Positions 2,219 to 14,705 of a DNA stretch of 41,682 nt are shown in pieces. Numbering within the stretch: position 1 is the first letter of the stretch; the number at the start of each line of letters is the position of its first letter. A model generated the notes under the pieces. It was not told the DNA's origin. It saw nothing but the letters and a program-made list of their open reading frames with translations, and ran no database searches. Origin of the DNA: Lenisia limosa (taxonomy: Eukaryota > Protista > Breviatea). A program made the translations under genes and the position numbers. The stretch lies in contig LPNZ01006180.1 of the NCBI GenBank assembly GCA_001655205.1, forward strand, positions 1 through 41,682, read 5' to 3'.

Positions 2219-5200
2219 TTATCCATAGTGTTTGGAATTGGAATTTCGAAGAGCAAGTTGAGAAGGAATAATGATAAAGAAGACGAAGAACAAGATGATT
2301 ACGAAGATCTCGAGTCTGCTGCTCCTGCCGTTGCCAACGGGGAGGTCCGCAAAGCTTGGGAACAGAGACGTGTCATCAATGGACTTTTGGGCCGCAGGGT
2401 CATGAGGAAGGTTATCTGGGAGTATTGGGTTAATTCACACAGGCTCAACAGTATTATGAGGGGGGGAGGTGATATCCCACCTGGTGGAAGTTTGGCGGGG
2501 TCACCATCAACATCAATGACAGCAAACTCCTTGTCACTTGTGTCTTGAGCTTCAAGAGACCCGTCCAGTGAGGTGGTAGATTGCAAAGGCTCAATTGACT
2601 CCTTCTCAAACGGACAGTCCAGGTCTTTTTGGTTTATTGACGGTCTGATCTGGGGGTTGCGCAAGAGGGTATACGCCTTCAGCCATCTGATTTGTTGGCG
2701 GGAAGAAAAGAGACACAAAATAAAATTATTGATGGGGTGGATGGAAGTAGGAATTCTTATTTCACCATTTTCAATACCCTCTGACCGTTTTTGTGCACGT
2801 GAAGTCTGCGGTGCAAGCCCGGTTTTAAGTGTATAATATCCTAAACAGTTATTGTCTCCACGGGCCTACTGTGAAACATGATTCGACAGAACACCAGGAA
2901 AATGGGGTTCTGATGATGCGCATGGCAAACCACCATCGTCAAGTCTGAGAAATGGGAAAACTAAGGATTAGGACCAACATGCGAGATGCTCCCTATTGGG
3001 CACCAATCCAGCCTGCTCGTCTTTACATAAGAGACCCGTGGTGAAGAACTTATCGATTCGAACAAAGTTGGCTAGGGCCTGGAAAATCACAAAAAGATGA
3101 AGCAACAAGCACAAAATTCAAAACATCACAAGACTTACATTGAGTATTTTCTTAGCGAGCACGAAGATGCCGAAGAAGAGCCCTCCAAACACATACGACA
3201 CAATCGTTAGCAGATCGTAAACTGGGAAGAAACTATTTCTGGAGGTGGTTAGTGATAGGGGAGGCAACTGGAAATTGAAATGCAGTCAAAACAGGGGGTT
3301 TGTTGTGACCATCAGAGGAATTACAAGCCAAAGCCACGTAGAGTAGAATTGCAAGCCAAAGCCACGTACTTGAGCCGAGTCCCGTTAGTCGATGTGACGG
3401 CAGCAACAACAGGCAGTATGAAGCGAAGTACCACAGAGAGAATACCAAAGCTGATTGACACACTCGTGACAGCATGGATGATTTGGGCTTGGGTTGGTGG
3501 GCATAAAGCCAGCACCAGTAGTATGGGAGGGACCACCAGAATGAAGATGACCATAATGATAATGAACCTACTAGCCTACAGCAATGAAAACAGACCCTGT
3601 CATTACCTGAAGACCCGTGTAGAAGGACGAAATGGAAACGTTGAAATCTGACAAGCGGCCGTAGAACTTTTCTCCTTTTCGGATGGCCAATACCTGGTTG
3701 ATTAAAACAGTTGCTTGGTATGCATTATATAATACTCTTTGGATATGATTGGCAAACCTTCATTTTAAAGCGCCAAAAGATGTCGCGCCAAACCCATAGG
3801 CACACCGAACATCCAATAATGTTTGCTACCTGCAAGGTAAGGAACACGGCATCATACCAGGAACGCCTGTTGGCTATAGGTGGTAATGATGTCGAGAATG
3901 TTGAAGACTTTGTGTCGCTCATGAAGGATGTCATCAATGTAATCTTGAGCAAAGGCTGTGTGGTCACCTGTATTATGAGCATGATGTATAATGGAACAAT
4001 CTTCTATTTGCGCCTGTGTTTGAAGTTAGTTTTATCAAAAATGCCATAATAATACTCAGCATTTTATTTCCTTCCAGTCCAACCTAGGAAAAAGGCGATG
4101 GTTTGGAACGTTGTTGCGANNNNNNNNNNCGTCGAGAATGTTGAAGACTTTGTGTCGCTCATGAAGGATGTCATCAATGTAATCTTAAGCAAAGGCTGTG
4201 TGGTCACCTGTATTATGAGCATGATGTATAATGGAACAATCTTCTATTTGCGCCTGTGTTTGAAGTTGGTGTTATCAAAAATGCCATAATTATAACACAA
4301 CATTTTATTTCCTTCCAGTCCAACCTAGGAAAAAGGCGATGGTTTGGAACGTTGTTGCGAGCCACCCGGTTGTTCCCATTGAACTTGCTACAAATGACGG
4401 CGAAGGAAGGACAAACATTTATTGCCAGTTGAGACTTCGACAAGCTTGCTGATGCCTCCAACCATAGCGTCTTCTGCCAAGGGTTAAAAGCGAGGACAAT
4501 ATGGTCCGAAATTGACATGGGAAATATAATACGAGAGAGTATGTGATGTTATTTCATATATATATATATAGTATCTATAATATTTGAGATATATAATAAA
4601 TATTACTAATAGTATATCATATATGTATATATGTGGGTCCTCAAAGCTCCGGACATCATTCAAAATTCCCTGACACATCAAAACTCCCGGACAGCTTGAA
4701 ATTGACACCTTGTATAGGCCATTGCTAGTGTTTTTTGAAAAATGCTTCGACAGATACATAGAGAAATGGACCTCCTACATGTTCCCTAACTTTTTTTTTC
4801 AATTTTGAGCAAATGTCAACAATCCGTGAATTTGGTCTCCCGGGGGCCCCCCTTTTGCCTTTTCACAGGATTTTTTTCTGAATCTTACCCTCTTTTAGTG
4901 TTANNNNNNNNNNNNNNNNNNNNNNNNNNNNNNNNNNNNTAAAAAATATTTATACCCCTCGGAGTAATTGGTTCCGGGTTCCCATTTGCTTTGGCTATGT
5001 AATGGTGAATTTTGAGGAAAAAATGCTAAAAATAGCACTGTCTACAGGGGTAAACTTTCCCGGATAGTTGCCATTTATTCCTTGAATGTGGCCTTTTATA
5101 ACGGTTTTTGCTTGTTTTTGACCGTTTTTGGACCGTAAATAGAGAGCTTAGGGACTTAATTTGGTTTTGACCCGATAATATGTTAAATTGGGGTTTCATT

Positions 5201-8200
5201 ATTTGATTAAGATTGAGATTACTTTCAAAAACAGAAGGGAAATAGGGTTTCTGGGTGGTTTATTGTGATTTTGTATGGAAAACTCAAGCTGTTCGGGAGT
5301 TTTGATGTGTCCGGGAATTTTGAATGATGTCCGGAGCTTCGACTATACATATATTTATAATATGTATATCCTATATCAAAATAGAAATACATTTTGTATC
5401 AAACACACAACATCTTCCTCGAAATAATAATATATATGATAGATCAATAATAATACGCTCCCATCAATTCTGTTTCTTGTTAACATCCCAATGCTCACTC
5501 AGAAGGTCTTCTCTCTCCGCGTAAATTGATATCACAATTCCCACGTATTCAGCAATAGTCTTTCGCAGGGTTTCAACTCCAACCTGCAATTTAATACTTG
5601 GCCGGCCCTACCTTTGTCCACAAAGCCAGACACCAACTTGCAACACAGCAGTAGTACAAAATCTGTGCCGTCAGAAGAACTCTAACGACCCAAAAGGCAC
5701 CCATATTTCGCTTCATTCCAATACACTCCTCAACTTATTTTCTCATAAATCACGTTTATTCAGTTCATATGTTCTACACTTTCCTTGTACGCTTTCAAGA
5801 CAGAGCATACCCCAAGAGACACCCAGAAAGTGGTCCAGAGTCGAATGGGATATGTGAAATAGGCCGAAATGTGCTGAAATGTTAGGGTCTCATTATTTCC
5901 GGTCGAATGTGTCAACAACTCGCAAATCATAACAGTACATCAGAGAACTGGGGAGGGTTGGGGATGAAGAGGCTTGCAAGGTGTCTCTTTTTGAAATGCC
6001 TCAATGAAGCTCTGGCCCGAGTGATGGTTGATGTCATATCGTACTAAAGGGTCACAACCAAAGCCAGCCTACTCGGGAGCTGAGTACAAAATGGTGATAC
6101 TCATCATCAATCTGTTTCACTGACATTGTCAAACCAAGACGCTTCATTATACTCCTAAGCTATCAGGAAAATATAAAACCGAAAGACAGTTTTTGAAATT
6201 CCAACCTTTGTGTTCGAGGGAGTAGCGATCTCTTCGGGCTTTTGAGCTTGTTTGCAGGGGTCAAAAGCACTTTCACCACTTTCTGCGCATTATCTGAAAT
6301 GGCGAGGATATTCAAAGTCTCCGGCCGAGGCTGCAGGAGTCAGGATAACAGCCAACATACCTTCCGCAGTAGTTTGGTGACTGCGATAACGGAACAAAGA
6401 CAGCCAATGAAGAGAGCAACGAACTCTGGTATCCAGAGCAGCCCCTGAATAGTAAGTGGTTATATTGGTTAAATCTGAAGCAAGGGAAGCGAAGCAGATG
6501 GAACATATTTAACCATCTTGGGTAAACCATATCGACAACAGCTATTCATTCACCCAATGATTCGTACTGATACTCATCTCCCCCCCCCCCCTTCCAACAC
6601 CATGATCCTACCAATACGGCGTCTTGTGAAATTGACGTGTCCTCGAATGCAGCAAATGGAGTGACCAGGAGGATGACAATGGAAACAAGGTAACGCCGAA
6701 TGTCATTGGTCATGATGATGAAGATTGAAGCGCCAAGGTTGGATAAGCTGCCTATAGCCCGGGCCTCCGCATTAGCTGTGGGGAGGGAGTAAAATTGGAA
6801 ATTTTATGAAACAAAAAAGCTCACTCTGTTGGCTGACAACACACGAGGGTAACAAAACAAACAAAACCCAGGCCAGTCGCTTCTGTAGCGTACGGCAGTA
6901 TATACCCATTAACTTTTCAAATAAAAAAATCCCTTGACAAAACTCTGTCAAAAACAATTCAAAATGCTCCCTCATACACACTGAAAATTCACCCGGAACC
7001 AGGAGGTACATAATGTTAAAGGGATCCGAGATGAGGGGAGGAGAGTCACCCAAGGAGATCTCAGCTTGGTACCTTCCACTTGGTGCTGACAGGAGTCTAA
7101 AAGTCATGTATCACCATCGTTCACAAACTCAAGTGAGGTAAGGTCCACAATGCCGCTTGAGTTCGTTTTGGACGTATCAAGATCGTAAACAAAAGAAACA
7201 GTGTCGTTTGTCTGTTGATGAGAAAATAGTCCCGGCAGCTCACTTTTACATCCCTCAGAATCACTGAAACATCCCATCCATCAAGGTGTACGTTCCTACG
7301 TGTCAGAACCAATATGAAGTCCAAATAGCTCAATAATGGAAAGACCAGATAGTATATAATATGATACTGCTATTTATCTAAAAAAAAAGTCTGGAACGAG
7401 AAATACTGATGTTTTTCCAATCATTTCGAACCAAATGAAGCGTTGATAAAACGTTTCAATGGGAATAAGAGCACATTATCATTCACAATGCGCAATGCCC
7501 AATTAAGGATTACCTTGAGACTTGATCGTTCCTCTTGGCCTAAATAATAATAACAAGCGTGCTGAACTCTATATTTAGAGAACAGAAAAAACAAACTGGT
7601 ATCTGGCCGAAGCCGTCCACATTATCATGCTATACTCAGAGTCACTCCAGGGGCTTTGTCCAACCTTTATAATAGGGAAAATGTACTCAGTGCCTTGGTA
7701 AGTGTAAGGCCCAATAATGTACTAAAATGTGAGATATAAATGCCATTTTATCCGCTCACCGCCAATGGTATGCCGTCAGATTCCTGCTCTTCAGTTGGCT
7801 TCAGAACAGGGGACATCTGCTCCGGAGCAAGTAGGGGGTGCACGACATTGAAAGGCTTGGGCGTGAGTCACTGCAGGTGCCTACCTCTCCAAGGGTGCTT
7901 TTGTACTTGCCTGTGACCTGTAATCTGTATATTCCGGCGGAAGCTGACAATATCCTGCTTTTGAACACCGAATGTCCTAAAAAGTCATTTATGCCATCTT
8001 CGGTACAGCGGAAAACAAAATAAATACAATGCAAGACCATTCATAAATTACAAAATATAAATCTCCAGACCTTCAGCACCAGAGAGAATTCTGCTGACTT
8101 GGAGAACGGGTTTATGAGTTGAGGGGGCCACTGCGAATATCAAAAGTGAGGTAAAAAGCTATTTGTTTTATGCAACGAGTGTTATACGTATTTCTAAAGA

Positions 8201-11200
8201 ATGTACTAAAAAGTGTAGATCTTCAAAGAAGTAAAGAAGCTCACAGTTTGTTTGAGAGGAACACTCCAATGGACAAGACAAAGTTTTATAGTTTGCCGCT
8301 ATATTGGGGATGGTGATGACATAGCCATTGAAACGAGGTAGTCGCATTCCAAGCCCGCTCTCGATACACGAAACACAGTTCTAAACGTCAATAACAAGAG
8401 TTCCGTACATCTGAATAGGCTTGAGCAGGCTGCATTGTAATTGTCAGAAGCTCTGAAACAAAACAGTCTTCACAAGGAAACGAATACTTGACGGTGGCCT
8501 CAATCATCGAATCTCGAACCGTGCATGACTCAAGGCCTAGAGAGTGAAAGGGGGCAGGTGATCCTTCAATATGACTGTGGTTTTAGTCCTATTGCGCCAA
8601 TCAATAATTGAACAAATTTTTCTGGCACCAGATCCGACCTGCTTTCATATTGATTGAGAGATCCGAAATTCGCCGTTCGACAGTGTAGGAAATGGTGTGA
8701 CTCGCAGCACCGAATGCCTAGGGTTGGGATGGGAATTGAAAAAGTGTAACACTGCAGTTCAGAGCAAAATTATGAACTTATTTGGACATGTTTCCTCCTT
8801 ATATTACGTATTGCTACGTCTGAGATCACATCAGAGTACGAACTTACTACGAAATCTAATGAACAAACTTATAGCACTCACCCTCAATTGAATCGAATTT
8901 GCTGTTTGAAGGAGATTGTTGTGGGGAAGTTGATGAACCGTTGCAATAGTCACAAGGCCGTCAAAGGACTCAAAAGAAACATCATTTTGTTCAAATACTG
9001 GGTAAGGCTCTCCTGAAAGATAAAAGCCAAGCAACTCCATGTTACCTGACACGGCGTTGTACATTCGAAGATACTGATGCGCATGAACCTCCTTATGCCC
9101 TGAAAATGAATAATGGTGATGGTACTCTCACAGTTGTAAGAAAGAGTTGAAATGCTAAACTTCATATCTCTGCCTGCTGGAGACTCATACAAACTAAAAC
9201 CATGAGAAAAATGAGATAGGGTGAGGGATTCCACTGGTCAAAGATGATTCTTTTGAAGATTTCTCATACCCAGAAACAACGCTGTTTGGATCCGGGACAA
9301 AAGCGAGTTTAGCATGGGTGGTGATAGAAACCGTGGCATTTGTTAACAAGCAGTCCTGGGGGTTCACAGTACCAGGGAGGCACCAGGCTTGGTGAAGCTG
9401 AGGAAGTAATAAAAAGGCAAAAAGTGCGATAAACTCACTTCTCCGGGTGTGACATCAACCAAAGTGACTTCCTCAGTGGAATCCAAAGTCGTCGCTACCA
9501 CACGCGAAAGCCAGTTACTGGACAAGATGCCTTGCTAAAGCAACATTAAACGTTAGGCAACCAACATAGAGTGGAACGTCTTGTCCCTGGTACTGTACAT
9601 GACCGGCGTGGATGGCTGAGGGAAGGCCTGTCACTGTTTTCGACTGAGAAGTGAAATGAAATGAGAATGAAAACAATGAGTTTCAAAGGTCATACCACAA
9701 CAGCTTGCTTGAACGAAAGTCGCTCTGGGAACTGCGGATGAAACTCCACCTCCACTACTGCTGAACTGAATATATTATGAATAAAACATGAAACAACAAA
9801 ATTTGTGTTTATATCCCTGCCCAGTATCTCACCTGATCAATAGATCAGATACAAGTGCTACAATAAATCGGCCGCCCAGCCAGGGTGCAGCAGAAATAGA
9901 CAGGCTTGCCCGGCATGACCCTATACAGCTGGAGACGACCTCAATTGTGAGACCTTTGAGCGCCGGGTACTGCGGAAAACTGCAAAAGGGTGTGAAAGAA
10001 AAGTTAGGTCAGTCAGAGAATGTGTGAAATAATACGGGAAGGGGGAAAGTTACCGACTTTGAATGTGCCAGGAATGTCGGAACGGTAGTAGAGGAGACAA
10101 CAATGGCAGTGATATCAGCCTGGGTTACGTTTGTTGGGGCTTCGGTTGAGAACTGAACTTTGGCTTTGCCATTCCCTAAGTTGTGTGACATTCAAATTGG
10201 GATAATAATAATGATACTTCTATACTTCTTTGAGCTTAGCTTTATCTGTCGTACGTATGTATAGGAAAAATATTATGGGTTTAACTAAAACCGACAAACC
10301 TGAAAAAACGCGAGCTGATTCGGTGTGGAGTTTTGAATATGCAGAAGAGACGCTGACCCGGGTGGATTCTAGAACACTGTTAAACAAATACTTCACTATG
10401 GGGGAGAAATGTATAACGCTGTGAGTATAGAGTTGAAACGCAAATACAAGTGAATGAATTTCTCCATAACTCCCCAAAATTAGGATACTGTACCTATCAA
10501 AGAGTCTGTATTGATAGTTTCCGAGTTGGCCTACCATAGCACGATATTTCGGACAGATTAATAATGTCAGTTTTGGGATAAGTGTCGGAAGTAGTTGGTC
10601 TGGTTAATGAAAGGACAAAACCGGAGAAAATATAGCACGTTGTTATTTCCAGGGCTCAAGAAGCGTATGGGTCTTCTTTCGTGGAAAAGAACTAAAAAAA
10701 ATCATAACCAAAAATAACAAACCAAGGTTTTCGGCAAGGAGAGGAACATCGATTGCAATATTTACCTGGGGGGTTAATCATGACAAAAACCAACATTGTT
10801 AACTGGAACGCATGTTAACAACCGCACAGCCAGCGTGTTAATGGACGTTGTTGTCTCCGCCACGTGCAGTAACGGATAGGATATTTCAACACCAACACAT
10901 GCCTCATGGTCCGATACGACAGACCCATTAGTTGTGTGTGCATTAAGCCTAACAGAGTACACCTCAGCAGCATAAATGGTGTCTTGCAACGGTTGGGTCA
11001 CTTGGAAGCCTCGACATGTATAGTTGTCCCTTTTCGTGAGATCACAGGTCACCAACTCTTGAGATGAGACGGAGTACTTCAGTTTTGTGGAGAGGGTCAC
11101 TCCCTCTGCCAACTGCAATTTGATCACTGATGGTACAGCATTGAAACTCGATACAAAACGACATGAAACACTGAGTGCCAATGTAATCTAAAAAGTGAGA

Positions 11201-14200
11201 CTGTTACCTAGGTCTTTACCTCGGGGTTTACGTTTAGAGCTGGGAGACACAATATACGGGCTGATCCTTCAGCAGGGGTTGCTGTTATAACACCCGAGGA
11301 ATAGAAAATTTCTACTAGGCATTATTTGCTTGGGAAGATGGTCCAACCTTGGCTGTCTTTCATGACTGAGAGCTCGATTTCAAACCACTCGTCGATCTTG
11401 GGGGTCAAAGAAAGCCACCAACAAACATCACAGACGGCACCGCTGCATCCCTGCTCCCGGGAAATCAAAATTCTGTCTGAAGCTGCAGGAACATCAATAT
11501 TTCCACTCAATATCATTGCTCCTTGGAGATTGGCCGCAATTACTACAGTATTGCGTGTCCTAAATTGTCAGGAATAACCCTGGGATAAACTTATATCAGA
11601 ATCATATATTGATATCCCAATCTTCTGTTGGTTTTATTTGGACATAAATAAAACATTGAAATCAAAATAATATAACAGTACAATACTGTTCAAAGACGCC
11701 TGCAATAACGTTCGCTTTCTTTTCTTATTCAATAAATACTGCGTGAGAATTGGAACATAAAACATGCGTACATATGACGGGAGAGTAACATTTCACCGCA
11801 AATGGAGCCTTCATCACCACTCGGATGGCTGACGCTATGGAAGAGAATCCGTGTAAAGTCTGAACCATAAGGATAACAACATATGGCAAAGATGATAAAA
11901 TGGTCAAGCTTTGGTAAATATGCATATTCATGAACACTCTACTTAACCCCCTTTATAGTCCTGCAAACAGTTAGCTTCCAAAGATGAGTGCTCAATATGA
12001 GTCGGAAGCACTTTGCCGTCTGAAGCGTTACATTAATCATTTTCAATGCTTCGAAATGATTAATCTCTGCCAAACAGAGTCCCTATTTGCTACCAATATG
12101 AGTTCTCCTGCCGAAGCCATCAACCTCATCATGGTTATCAAGGAATCCTACCAATACTGTGAATAGCGAAAGTAGCTACAACGCCATCATCAAGCAGTGG
12201 CGAAATGCTCTGAACATAAGCACTGAACATCAGCACCAACAGTTAGACAGTAGCTGAGGGACACGGAACCTGAGCTTTGAAGTATTGGCGGCGAGCACTC
12301 AAAATCAAACGACACCTGTAACCAATAAGTCGCACAGGTATGGCCAACTCTCGAATTTTATCGGGCAAACCTTTGGGTTGTTTATGGCAATGGGTGTCCA
12401 CACATCCGGGTACATGGCCCATGGAATGTATTCCCCTTCGCAGAGAAACCCAAGGTACTAATGTGTTACAGAGTGTGAGGAAATGAGGGGATATTCCGAC
12501 ACATGTTTCAACCCACCACTCTATCTCCAGTTACTCCCAAAATGTTGGCATTTCTGATGATACCCTTGTTTCTTTCGAATTGTACCGTAGAATTGGCAAT
12601 GACCGCTAAAGAGCTAAACAAAAGCCCCACCCCAAAGAGCCGCAATCAAGAATCAATATACGGATCCATTAGTAGAATACATGGGGTCTTCGAATTTGAT
12701 TTGGATCCCGCAAACCATGATTACCGCCAAACGGAAGAGTTTGATTATACGGAACGTCAGAGGTGAGTTCTAACCGTCTCAAACTTGTCAACTCCTGACC
12801 ATCCCTATCGAACATCGCAACCTACAAGTGAAAAAGCCAAACAGATCCTCTTTCTATTGTTTTGAAATAATTATGAAAATATTAAATACTGTCTGTCGGT
12901 GCTGAAATTATTATGTTTCTGGATTTTTTAACTTCCAATCAATGTAGTAGAACCTCACAAACTTCGATAGGAGGCAGCGGCTGCCCTAGTGTGATTGAGC
13001 TTGGAGGTTTGGTGTTAACCCGAAGACGAAACTGCGCTTGATCTTGGAGATAATCAACATGTAGTACCAACTAATATACGTATACTGGACAGGCGCAAAA
13101 GTTGGCGGGCTGTTTTCGGACGCATTCTCAAGGCACATTGGGAGAGGAGAAATCTTATACAATCCTAAATAGGTGATTATCTTTTAGCATTACTCAAGAA
13201 GGATTGATTATTTATTTATGTATGAGTAAATGGTATAATTTGTTGATTTATTACTCGAGATAATGCTCTTTAACCCAAACTGACCAGGGGATGCTGAGGT
13301 CACCGAAAGCTTTTTGAATGTAGCAAACTAAAAGAGTTAATGCAATTTTCACCAACTCCCTGGTCGTCAGAGTGAGTTTCTTTGACGTCAAACGAGACGG
13401 CAGGACTATCAATAAAATCAAATCCTGAAGGAGTAAGAGACCAAATTGCATTTCGATAAAAGATATTGATAATATAGTCCACAAATTTATTGTCTTTCGC
13501 AAGTGCCCAACCATTAGTGCCTCACTCAGGTTTTCAAAGGAAACCGCCAACCAGTCAAGAGATTTGAGAAGCTTGGTGGCTGCAGCAGCAAGGGGATGTT
13601 ACAGGGGTCATTGGGCTCGGGTTTGACAATGTGAAAGTACAGGTCCACAGGACAGTTTTTGATGGGAAATCCCAGGGAATTCTTTATCGCAAACTACACT
13701 ATAAGAGAGATCGATGCAACCACATTACAGGAGAATACTCGACACAGACTTGGTTATCCACTCTTTTGTTCTCCCCCACCTACCATTGGGTAGTATGTTG
13801 CTGCCTTGACCACTTGCTTGCCTAAAACGTAATTCATACATATCATATGTATGCATGTTGACCAATGCACATGAGTGGATATCATATCACTGCGTGGAAA
13901 ACAACTGTGAAAATGAAACGAAAGGTGCTATGATACAAAAGTGCTTGTGGAGAAACAGAAAAGAAAAACATATTTAAACCAACACAACATTAAGTAAACC
14001 AAGAGAATCGATCAGAAAAGACCCACCACGGAGAAAAAAACACACTTGAAGCTATCGCAAAGCCTACCAGTTTCAATAACAGAGGGCACTTTGACGATAG
14101 TGTCGATTTCGAAGGGAATTGCGTTTCCGTAAAGCGGCGACGGATCGAACAAAACATTGGCAACCAACACTTCAACGTAAATCATTCCACTTAGAGGCCT

Positions 14201-14705
14201 ACAATGAAGAATGGACAACACTGATGCTGCTAGGAAGAAGCCCATGCCATGCCGACTCACCACCTGAGATCGTCGTCAGGTTGTGGTATATCAATATCCA
14301 CGCTTTTTTGTGTAGATAGATTACATATGCCTCCCAAAAGTATAGAAGTAATGGTGAATAAAAGTAGATTTTATGAGTATGTTTTGCTCAAAGAGGCATG
14401 TCTACAATGCCTTGGAGGACTATCGGGCCAGGTCCAATACTGCTATGCACAACCCTTACTACATCAACCTTGAGCCTTCAAACCTGCTCATGTACAACGT
14501 CATAGATATTCTAAATAGTTGGTTGGGGAATAATATGGCCTACAGAAGACATTCTCAGGTGGGCTTTCAGCCCCCATCGTTTGACATCAGCATCGTCATT
14601 GCTGACAGGCTCGGAGCTGTCAAGCAAGGACATTTCTTGGTCCGTTCTACTCTCCTCGTCGCTCTCAAGGAGGGGCTGCTTGAGCTGTTGCTCACTGCAA
14701 GACAT
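2219..14705 (-). CDS. STRA6L: Giant STRA6/RBPR2-like (RBP-receptor family) multipass membrane protein with a long N-terminal beta-rich, Ig/filamin-like region; dozens of exons
   Basis: Spliced minus-strand exons give STRA6-family signatures in the expected order: FQKRHLASLF...AYFTYPIRLWTTFW (~5830-6000); SQQAFLVANIIGCSVCLWVWRDIFWRFKMKVLAIRKGEKFY...SSFYTGLQASRFIIIMVIF (3540-3880); RLKNSFFPVYDLLTIVSYVFGG...ALANFVRIDK (3050-3230); AYLTMVVCHAHHQNPIFLVFCRIM (2880-2945); TSRAQKRWLKAYTLLRNP (2653-2815). The exon phase across the ~1 kb intron (4487-5498) is compatible. Same-strand exons continue to ~14.2-14.7 kb. The start (14705, or a signal-peptide-like MGFFLAASVLSIL at 14245) and the stop (2219 or 2299) are uncertain. 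Confidence 0.72.
3318..3373. repeat. 28-bp tandem duplication at an intron 5' splice site
   Basis: gaattacaagccaaagccacgtagagta followed by gaattgcaagccaaagccacgtacttga. On the minus strand the first copy carries the GT donor (gtacgtggc) and the second has lost it. Confidence 0.85.
4641..5342. mobile_element. MITE-like non-autonomous DNA element with 59-bp terminal inverted repeats, inside an intron of the STRA6-like gene
   Basis: 4641-4699 (tcaaagctccggacatcattcaaaattccctgacacatcaaaactcccggacagcttga) matches the reverse complement of 5284-5342 with 3 mismatches. There is no internal ORF, the flanks are TA-rich, and there is an internal N gap. No target-site duplication could be resolved. 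Confidence 0.75.
6852..6889 (-). repeat. 38-bp dispersed intronic motif, copy 2
   Basis: The reverse complement reads gctacagaagcgactggcctgggttttgtttgttttgt. It lies in the intron between STRA6-like exons ending LLVP and starting ANAEARAIG. Confidence 0.85.

Follow-up and report, generated by a model that had tools for sequence, protein, structure and literature searches.

The question raised by this locus is whether a membrane module of the STRA6 type is joined, in a single protist gene, to a very large N-terminal region, or whether two or more neighbouring genes have been read as one. The locus lies in contig LPNZ01006180.1 of the Lenisia limosa assembly GCA_001655205.1, from a probable breviate; the window, that is, the whole stretch of DNA analyzed, comprises 41,682 nt of eukaryotic sequence in which short introns are dense. 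An initial annotation, made from the sequence letters, had described positions 2219–14705 as a giant STRA6-like transporter apparently fused to a long beta-rich N-terminal part. The reading preferred here, to which a probability of about 0.55 was assigned, is that the upstream region and the STRA6 module form one gene. It would be a minus-strand gene of ~60 exons, running from ~14.2–14.7 kb to 2219 and encoding a membrane protein of ~2,300 aa, in which a signal peptide or N-terminal anchor would be followed by a ~1,600-aa extracellular region and a ~700-aa multi-pass, divergent STRA6/RBP_receptor domain. Two public runs of one 2016 study, both holding the locus, were used: X1 consists of DNA contigs (98–100% of the sampled words were present, and the assembly was probably made from this run), and X2 is a poly-A metatranscriptome from which the RNA contigs were taken.

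The STRA6-type module and the BP2 helix

At the level of sequence, it is regarded as established that the C-terminal module shares ancestry with its counterpart in STRA6/RBP_receptor proteins (Pfam family PF14752), because the hhalign probability was 96.8% and the scores of both a module hidden Markov model (HMM) and BLASTP lay above those of all shuffles. The hhalign comparison was made against an alignment of PF14752-positive proteins (E-value = 2.9 × 10−10, 113 columns), the module HMM gave 22.5 bits (reached by 0 of 600 shuffles, maximum 5.7), and BLASTP with the protist protein P0005 gave 38 bits over 261 collinear aa (reached by 0 of 600 shuffles, maximum 26.9). The BLASTP alignment with the animal STRA6-like protein P0004, extending from exon A to the BP2 helix over 370 aa, scored 25.4 bits; 4 of 300 local shuffles and none of 300 global shuffles attained this score. 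The five ordered family motifs reported in the initial annotation were found again, in the family order, by comparison with PF14752-positive proteins: IRKGE (LRxGD in the family), FYTGLQ (YxGxQ), VRIDK (RxDK/RVQK), AYLTMVVCHAHHQNPIFLVF, which is the counterpart of the family motif AY..HxHxNPxLxVF, and KRWLKAYTLLRNP, which corresponds to BP2.

The module is encoded in a spliced and transcribed region of the minus strand (2219–4473) that specifies a multi-pass membrane protein, and the spliced protein was built from exon coordinates according to a manual splice model. Six minus-strand GT-AG introns were confirmed by RNA contigs, namely 3605–3575 and 2480–2416 in this region and 13783–13694, 13551–13425, 9269–9194 and 7759–7722 in the chain of exons upstream. 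In total, the poly-A RNA contigs show seven minus-strand introns between 2.4 and 13.8 kb. The modelled features, including the helix exons that precede the module, are the following:

6361–6444, minus strand: first clear membrane helix exon, with a basic stop-transfer, GLLWIPEFVALFIGCLCSVIAV-TKLLRK
6330–6206, 6154–6073, 6043–5939, 5873–5811, 5710–5612 and 5571–5485, minus strand: six exons of the manual splice model, phases consistent
4297–4473, minus strand: exon h (KTLWLEAS...KEIKCC), preceded by a strong phase-0 acceptor at 4474 or by the start ATG 4518
3758–4243 (4243–4130 joined to 3889–3758), minus strand: exon A, with two membrane helices, a 92-codon open frame
3890–4129 (240 nt), no strand: assembly artefact (230-nt duplicate and gap 4120–4129), removed from the model
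2481–3693, minus strand: exons B–H of the splice model, conserved STRA6 C-terminal module, with the RNA-confirmed intron 3605–3575
3693–3607, minus strand: module exon with IRKGE and FYTGLQ
3575–3325 and 3238–3139, minus strand: two module exons
3078–2979, minus strand: module exon with VRIDK
2944–2870, minus strand: module exon with HAHHQNPIFLVF
2840–2786, minus strand: module exon
2686–2481, minus strand: BP2-helix exon, with BP2 at 2685–2653, then an acidic tail
2219–2415, minus strand: last coding exon, stop codon 2221–2219; an RNA contig splices 2481 to 2415

The segment 3890–4129 was attributed to a scaffolding duplication in the assembly, because positions 3889 and 4130 are adjacent in an X1 DNA contig and 3891–4119 is a 97% copy of 4131–4360; with the duplicate removed, the exon across the gap 4120–4129 is continuous in one frame. 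The two copies differ at seven sites, six of which fall within 4268–4297, inside the modelled intron 4296–4244, while the seventh is a synonymous third-position change, and the exon structure at 4296–4244 is therefore independently supported. Exon h is contained in a 111-codon open frame (4548–4216), where a weak zf-TRAF match was also detected (E-value = 0.009). A different frame for 4420–3840, which would use four strong splice sites together with the GTGAGC donor at 5497, can also be drawn; it was rejected because the competing frame has open stretches of 111 and 92 codons as well as a PF14752 match.

The PF14752 match expected from the initial annotation was sought with fragments of the protein among 24,736 Pfam families. 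Two independent fragments matched collinearly, both under the gathering score of 25 bits: a spliced 99-aa piece (16.2 bits, E-value = 0.0045, profile positions 569–599) and exon A (13.8 bits, E-value = 0.024, profile positions 426–484). Splicing out 2785–2687 lifted the score of the former from 11.7 to 16.2 bits, the BP2 exon alone gave an E-value of 0.1, and further pieces (30 stop-free and two spliced) returned nothing relevant. Scores below the curated cut-off speak against the assignment and would fit a motif arising by chance in an unrelated membrane protein, as would the PDB sequence search with single exons and the spliced 99 aa, in which the zebrafish STRA6 chain was not matched, and the estimate that the ~250,000 windows scanned could yield about two chance matches to BP2 at eight positions. 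Chance is nevertheless a very improbable explanation, close to refuted: it would have to produce five motifs in the right order and spacing, the hhalign probability given above, HMM and BLASTP scores beyond all 600 shuffles, and two collinear matches to one family out of 24,736.

Among the other searches, that for homologous proteins with exon A gave no candidates, that for related metagenome loci with the 99-aa piece gave no confirmed relatives, and that of the ESM Atlas with two exons gave no usable match; the one match of a protein search with exon 3324–3575 was spurious and without a family. Judging from the alignments, detectable family similarity is limited to the ~240 residues that immediately precede the acidic tail. 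The STRA6-like membrane region described initially is homologous in its C-terminal ~240 residues, whereas its N-terminal helices are without detectable similarity to the animal N-terminal domain. A hand alignment of exon A with the family motif NR..F gave way to the HMM alignment, in which FYTGLQ falls at YxGxQ; a match of 5734–5594 to the first module helix of the family (E-value = 0.25) was discarded as helix-to-helix noise.

The BP2 segment closely resembles its animal counterparts. BP2 binds Ca2+-calmodulin in both zebrafish and sheep STRA6; in the zebrafish protein it is the principal calmodulin-binding helix, with sub-nanomolar affinity, and a role for calmodulin in regulating the direction of vitamin A transport has been suggested (PMC12714816). 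BP2 peptides have been printed for sheep (...RARWGLAYTLLHNPAL...) and zebrafish (...RAHWQLLYTLVNNPSL...) (PMC12714816), and the peptide encoded here (...QKRWLKAYTLLRNPQI...) matches them at R, W, A, Y, T, L, L, N and P. The helix, KRWLKAYTLLRNP (sheep RARWGLAYTLLHNP, zebrafish RAHWQLLYTLVNNP), is encoded by 2653–2685 plus a split Arg codon; WLKAYTLLRNP itself occupies 2653–2685 on the minus strand, in the next-but-one exon after HAHHQNPIFLVFC (2886–2924, minus strand). The pattern basic-x-R-W-x-x-[AL]-Y-T-L-[LV]-x-N-P was found here when compared with sheep, zebrafish and ~20 metagenomic family members. Consequently, the claim that the calmodulin-binding segment is kept agrees with the published peptides, and the predicted calmodulin-binding sequence is conserved almost residue for residue. 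The reading of RAQKR followed by WLKAY requires a ~99-nt intron at 2785–2687 with a weak GTCAGA donor and a strong pyrimidine-rich acceptor, and this stretch is also open in frame when unspliced.

Downstream of BP2 and the acidic tail, a strongly hydrophobic C-terminal segment of ~20 aa (IFVIILFFVFFIIIP, 2222–2290), absent from the relatives, was observed; it could be a further membrane anchor. The RNA contig over the last exon continues unspliced to below 2100. This contig, of 1,939 nt, covers the last two exons and extends 1,480 nt beyond 2100, which represents either a very long 3′ untranslated region or a merger with a neighbouring transcript.

The coding chain upstream of the module

Upstream of the helix exon 6444–6361, a continuous same-strand exon chain encoding ~1,600 aa can be drawn from 14245 to 6446 on the minus strand. 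Two features describe it:

6612–14263, minus strand: exon chain of ~44 exons, ~1,600-aa region; draft model, single exon borders approximate
14544–14705, minus strand: optional first coding exon with ATG 14705, an acidic N-terminus, an open frame and a phase-0 GTAGGC donor

With a codon table trained on the membrane module only, the chain scored +109 bits, whereas the plus strand scored −66 bits and local shuffles did not exceed 35 bits; four introns of the chain are among those confirmed by RNA. The upstream exon chain proposed in the initial annotation is thus real. It opens at ATG 14245 with a signal-peptide- or anchor-like stretch (MGFFLAASVLSILHC); alternatively, exon 14544–14705 would be joined at 14263 via a ~280-nt intron without RNA support. 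The region is rich in Cys and in N-x-S/T sites, and the product of 6612–14263 is presumed to be an ectodomain. A JAB/MPN match at ~9040 (E-value = 6 × 10−4) was rejected because its core, LLGFYLSG, translates a probable 33-nt intron (GTAACA...TTTCAG).

One gene or several: the two joints

The unity of the locus depends on two joints, each of which carries repeated DNA:

6776–6977, minus strand: joint 1, inferred 202-nt intron holding a high-copy repeat at ~6805–6890
4474–5484, minus strand: joint 2, inferred 1,011-nt intron, of which 766 nt are a miniature inverted-repeat transposable element (MITE); ~245 nt without it
4609–5374, no strand: MITE-like repeat of 766 nt with 91-nt terminal inverted repeats, inside the intron 5484–4474 or in an intergenic spacer

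In the one-gene reading, both repeat-bearing stretches would be introns invaded by mobile elements. Joint 1 is likely to be an intron: it has a GTATGAG donor, the first seven letters of which are identical to those of the RNA-confirmed intron at 9269, a pyrimidine-rich CCCCACAG acceptor, and phase 1 on both sides. Because strong splice signals and a repeat occur together there, repeat-bearing introns of ~200 nt are plausible in this locus. For joint 2, an intron is regarded as likely with slightly more confidence; position 4474 provides a strong acceptor, and its phase (0) agrees with the frame downstream, which is well supported.

The structure of the protein on the two sides of joint 2 bears on the same question. 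Exons 6330–5485 encode a basic, presumably cytosolic stretch of ~105 aa followed by two to three hydrophobic segments, and an RNA contig covers 5571–5509 in the sole open frame there. The exons join in consistent phase, and between the first membrane helix and the stop codon the frame stays open for 712 aa, which is the size of animal STRA6; the first helix and the LRxGD-type motif (IRKGE) are 359 aa apart, compared with 338–359 aa in five animal relatives. At least five helices precede this motif in all seven relatives checked, whereas only two would do so with a start at 4518. The spacing match may be due to chance, because the protist protein P0006 does not keep it (571 aa), which is a point on the other side. 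Fusion is further favoured by protist relatives in which this C-terminal module follows large N-terminal parts of other kinds. Hydropathy of the fused model shows ~9 hydrophobic segments from 6444 to BP2, the parity of which fits an outside N-terminus and an inside BP2; the two-gene model has six segments and is likewise consistent with the topology parity of STRA6, in which nine helices separate an outside N-terminus from an inside C-terminus.

Other observations weigh against a single gene and would be explained by two or three same-strand neighbouring genes with the repeats in intergenic spacers, an arrangement considered a serious possibility at somewhat less than even odds. A giant secreted or membrane-anchored protein would then end at TGA 5466 or before 6776, and a STRA6-like gene would start from ATG 4518 (~510 aa, six helices plus BP2) or from ATG ~6716 (~746 aa, an ordinary size for such a gene). 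The only phase-0 donor of joint 2 beyond the RNA-covered part, GTTAAC after GAT at 5484, is weak, and a strong donor, GTGAGC at 5497, has phase 1, which does not suit the downstream frame. An in-frame TGA at 5466, six codons beyond the weak donor, together with ATG 4518, which leads a 101-codon open frame just past the MITE, completes a two-gene reading; the statement of the initial annotation that there was no obvious gene boundary does not hold, since these two signals flank the MITE. No record among the X2 RNA contigs spans joint 1 or joint 2. The depth of the RNA contigs with distance from the 3′ end (27.6, 5.8, then 10.7 and 12.7) shows no steady fall and is higher at 5.5–7.8 kb than at 3.4–3.7 kb, a profile that fits two transcripts slightly better. 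The upstream helices are without detectable STRA6 homology: an HMM of the animal N-terminal domain gave −4.2 bits against them, within the shuffle range (mean −4.0; reached by 251 of 300). Nor did the region further upstream yield a Pfam family or an Atlas neighbour, and the N-terminal repeats mentioned initially were absent, with no internal protein repeats in 6.4–15 kb at E < 10−3. An AlphaFold2 model of one 137-aa exon contained beta strands only, which is weakly consistent with the beta-rich region proposed, but its predicted local distance difference test (pLDDT) score of 38 means that there is no confident fold. Finally, a simple ab initio gene finder in which intergenic states are permitted splits the chain exactly at 5466.

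Division into several genes has difficulties of its own. The 4518 start would leave a STRA6-like protein with too few helices before the LRxGD-type motif when compared with the seven relatives, the 359-aa spacing would be a coincidence, the upstream protein would have an odd three-helix tail, and the splice signals at 6977–6776 are strong and phase-matched. The gene finder, moreover, was uncalibrated and also broke the chain at 13.3–12.4 kb, where manual splicing is continuous, with ordinary GT-AG introns of 25–135 nt and protein-like exons. Thus, of the fusion claimed in the initial annotation, the coding chain and the phases hold, while the two joints are without RNA and the two-gene reading fits the sequence equally.

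A decaying copy, that is, a formerly continuous giant gene disrupted by the MITE and the short repeat and now weakly transcribed, is improbable. Two mobile-element insertions within the locus and a very low RNA depth (2–6) across most of it would suit decay; however, the modelled exons are all open and in phase over ~2,300 codons, the introns are precisely removed in RNA, the differences between the duplicated copies are intronic in six of seven cases and synonymous in the seventh, and neither insertion falls within the modelled coding sequence.

The repeats themselves were characterized from the DNA contigs. The arms of the MITE (4609–4699 and 5284–5374) are 81% complementary, its flanks are TA-rich, its contig depth in X1 is ~10,000, and pieces of it also occur in unrelated RNA contigs. 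A second assembly gap, 4904–4939, lies inside the MITE and touches no coding sequence in any model; it is spanned, by 6 letters, in one X1 contig, which may derive from a different copy of the element. The short repeat at ~6805–6890 has an extreme copy number, with a DNA depth of ~72,000 summed over 6700–6899. A second copy of it lies in the opposite orientation at 1096–1148, adjoining the gap 1149–1241, and many DNA contigs end at this short repeat. With regard to the 93-nt RNA contig over exon 5571–5485, it matches 5571–5509 exactly, its first 30 letters map elsewhere, the implied 3′ splice site at 5571/5572 follows ...GTTGAA instead of AG, and a CAG acceptor 11 nt upstream is unused.

Relatives, proposed mechanism and meaning

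Relatives were sought by scanning metagenome contigs with the back-translated pattern W..AYTLL.NP, and ~20 of the 60 matches had the context basic-RW..AYTLL.NP. One of them, L011, contains an intronless frame of 687 aa that matches PF14752 from end to end (E-value = 9.5 × 10−85) and shares 45% identity with a STRA6-like protein of a jellyfish. L059, equivalent to P0005, encodes 1,221 aa with DOMON, cytochrome b561 and PF14752 at profile positions 394–605 only, on a gene-dense, intron-poor contig of picoeukaryote type with 62% G+C and eukaryotic neighbours. P0006, a protist transcript of 909 aa from MMETSP, matches PF14752 only at 386–603. The alignment of the modules of these relatives shows LRxGD, YxGxQ, RxDK/RVQK, AY..HxHxNPxLxVF and BP2 in this order. 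The metagenomic BP2 loci L048, L017 and L031 are animal-type genes with kilobase introns and were set aside as uninformative on fusion.

Comparison with animal STRA6/RBPR2, represented by zebrafish and sheep STRA6, the jellyfish STRA6-like protein P0003 and L011, showed the same ordered LRxGD, YxGxQ, RxDK and HxHxNPxLxVF motifs and BP2 (RW..AYTLL.NP identical to sheep), with BP2 at the predicted cytosolic C-terminal side of the multi-pass domain and, in the fused model, the same length from the first helix to the stop codon (~700 aa) and the same spacing from helix to LRxGD. Unlike in the animal proteins, an extra hydrophobic segment follows the acidic tail and the place of two helices is taken by a basic loop of ~105 aa; in the N-terminal helices, similarity to the animal ones is undetectable. 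The animal relatives are 648–744 aa long with 21–77 residues before the first helix, which bears out the size of ~650–700 aa and the short N-terminus given in the initial annotation, whereas here possibly ~1,600 residues precede it. The protein resembles P0005 and P0006 in its conserved BP2 and, if the fused model is right, in having the module as the C-terminal part of a larger protein with several membrane passes. In those two proteins, Pfam recognizes only profile positions ~386–605, and homology of the first five helices to the animal N-terminal domain was not detected in the protist members, as it was not here. Their N-terminal parts are of other kinds, a DOMON–b561 redox module in P0005 and ~650 aa with several helices in P0006, compared with the putative ~1,600-aa ectodomain here; both are intronless open frames, whereas the gene here would have ~60 exons. 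Because it is also found behind DOMON and cytochrome b561, the C-terminal module behaves as a movable unit.

STRA6 has been called animal-specific (PMC5977736). The novelty outside animals proposed initially is only partly upheld: the homologue found here is a divergent protist one, while PF14752 modules already occur in an MMETSP protist and on a picoeukaryote-type contig, and protist PF14752 entries are known from sequence collections. What is new is a near-perfect BP2 in a probable breviate, an ectodomain that may be giant, and the use of the C-terminal half as a module.

The mechanism of STRA6 is described as different from that of other transporters. In the one-gene reading, the large N-terminal region would lie outside the cell and BP2 in the cytosol, calmodulin would be bound via BP2 on the cytosolic tail, and the STRA6-type helices would pass a small hydrophobic ligand from an extracellular site into the membrane. 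Retinol-binding protein (RBP) is not expected in a protist. The ectodomain, if fused, may replace the soluble carrier that docks on animal STRA6 and supply the ligand or the contact with a target; ligand capture in place of RBP, with uptake of lipids or retinoids, is speculation. Broader still, and rather unlikely, is the idea of an expanded family of giant receptor-transporters, in which a calmodulin-regulated STRA6-type module of pre-animal age would be combined, in place of a soluble carrier, with a built-in ectodomain of ~1,600 aa that binds ligand or prey.

If this were true, STRA6 would have begun as a carrier-independent device for the uptake or sensing of hydrophobic molecules, which animals later shortened and coupled to RBP. 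Because the protist homologue keeps the calmodulin-binding helix nearly unchanged, the module and its control by calmodulin are probably older than retinoid signalling and RBP, and the ancestral function of STRA6 becomes an experimental question. A real fusion would also provide a natural case of a ligand-delivery part built into a receptor.

Several minor observations concern the relatives. The fusion of DOMON and cytochrome b561 to the C-terminal half of STRA6, with BP2 conserved, was seen at L059:93-3968 and L062:10001-13666. A gene for a CRAL_TRIO protein (Sec14-type lipid-binding) lies near the STRA6-module gene in both protist contigs, adjacent and convergent in L061 (L061:3325-5412) and ~10 kb away in L062 (L062:1-135); none was found downstream within the window. 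Two further metagenome contigs, L046 and L049, carry mammalian-type STRA6 last exons (GRARWGLAYTLLHNP...), presumably from host or contaminant DNA.

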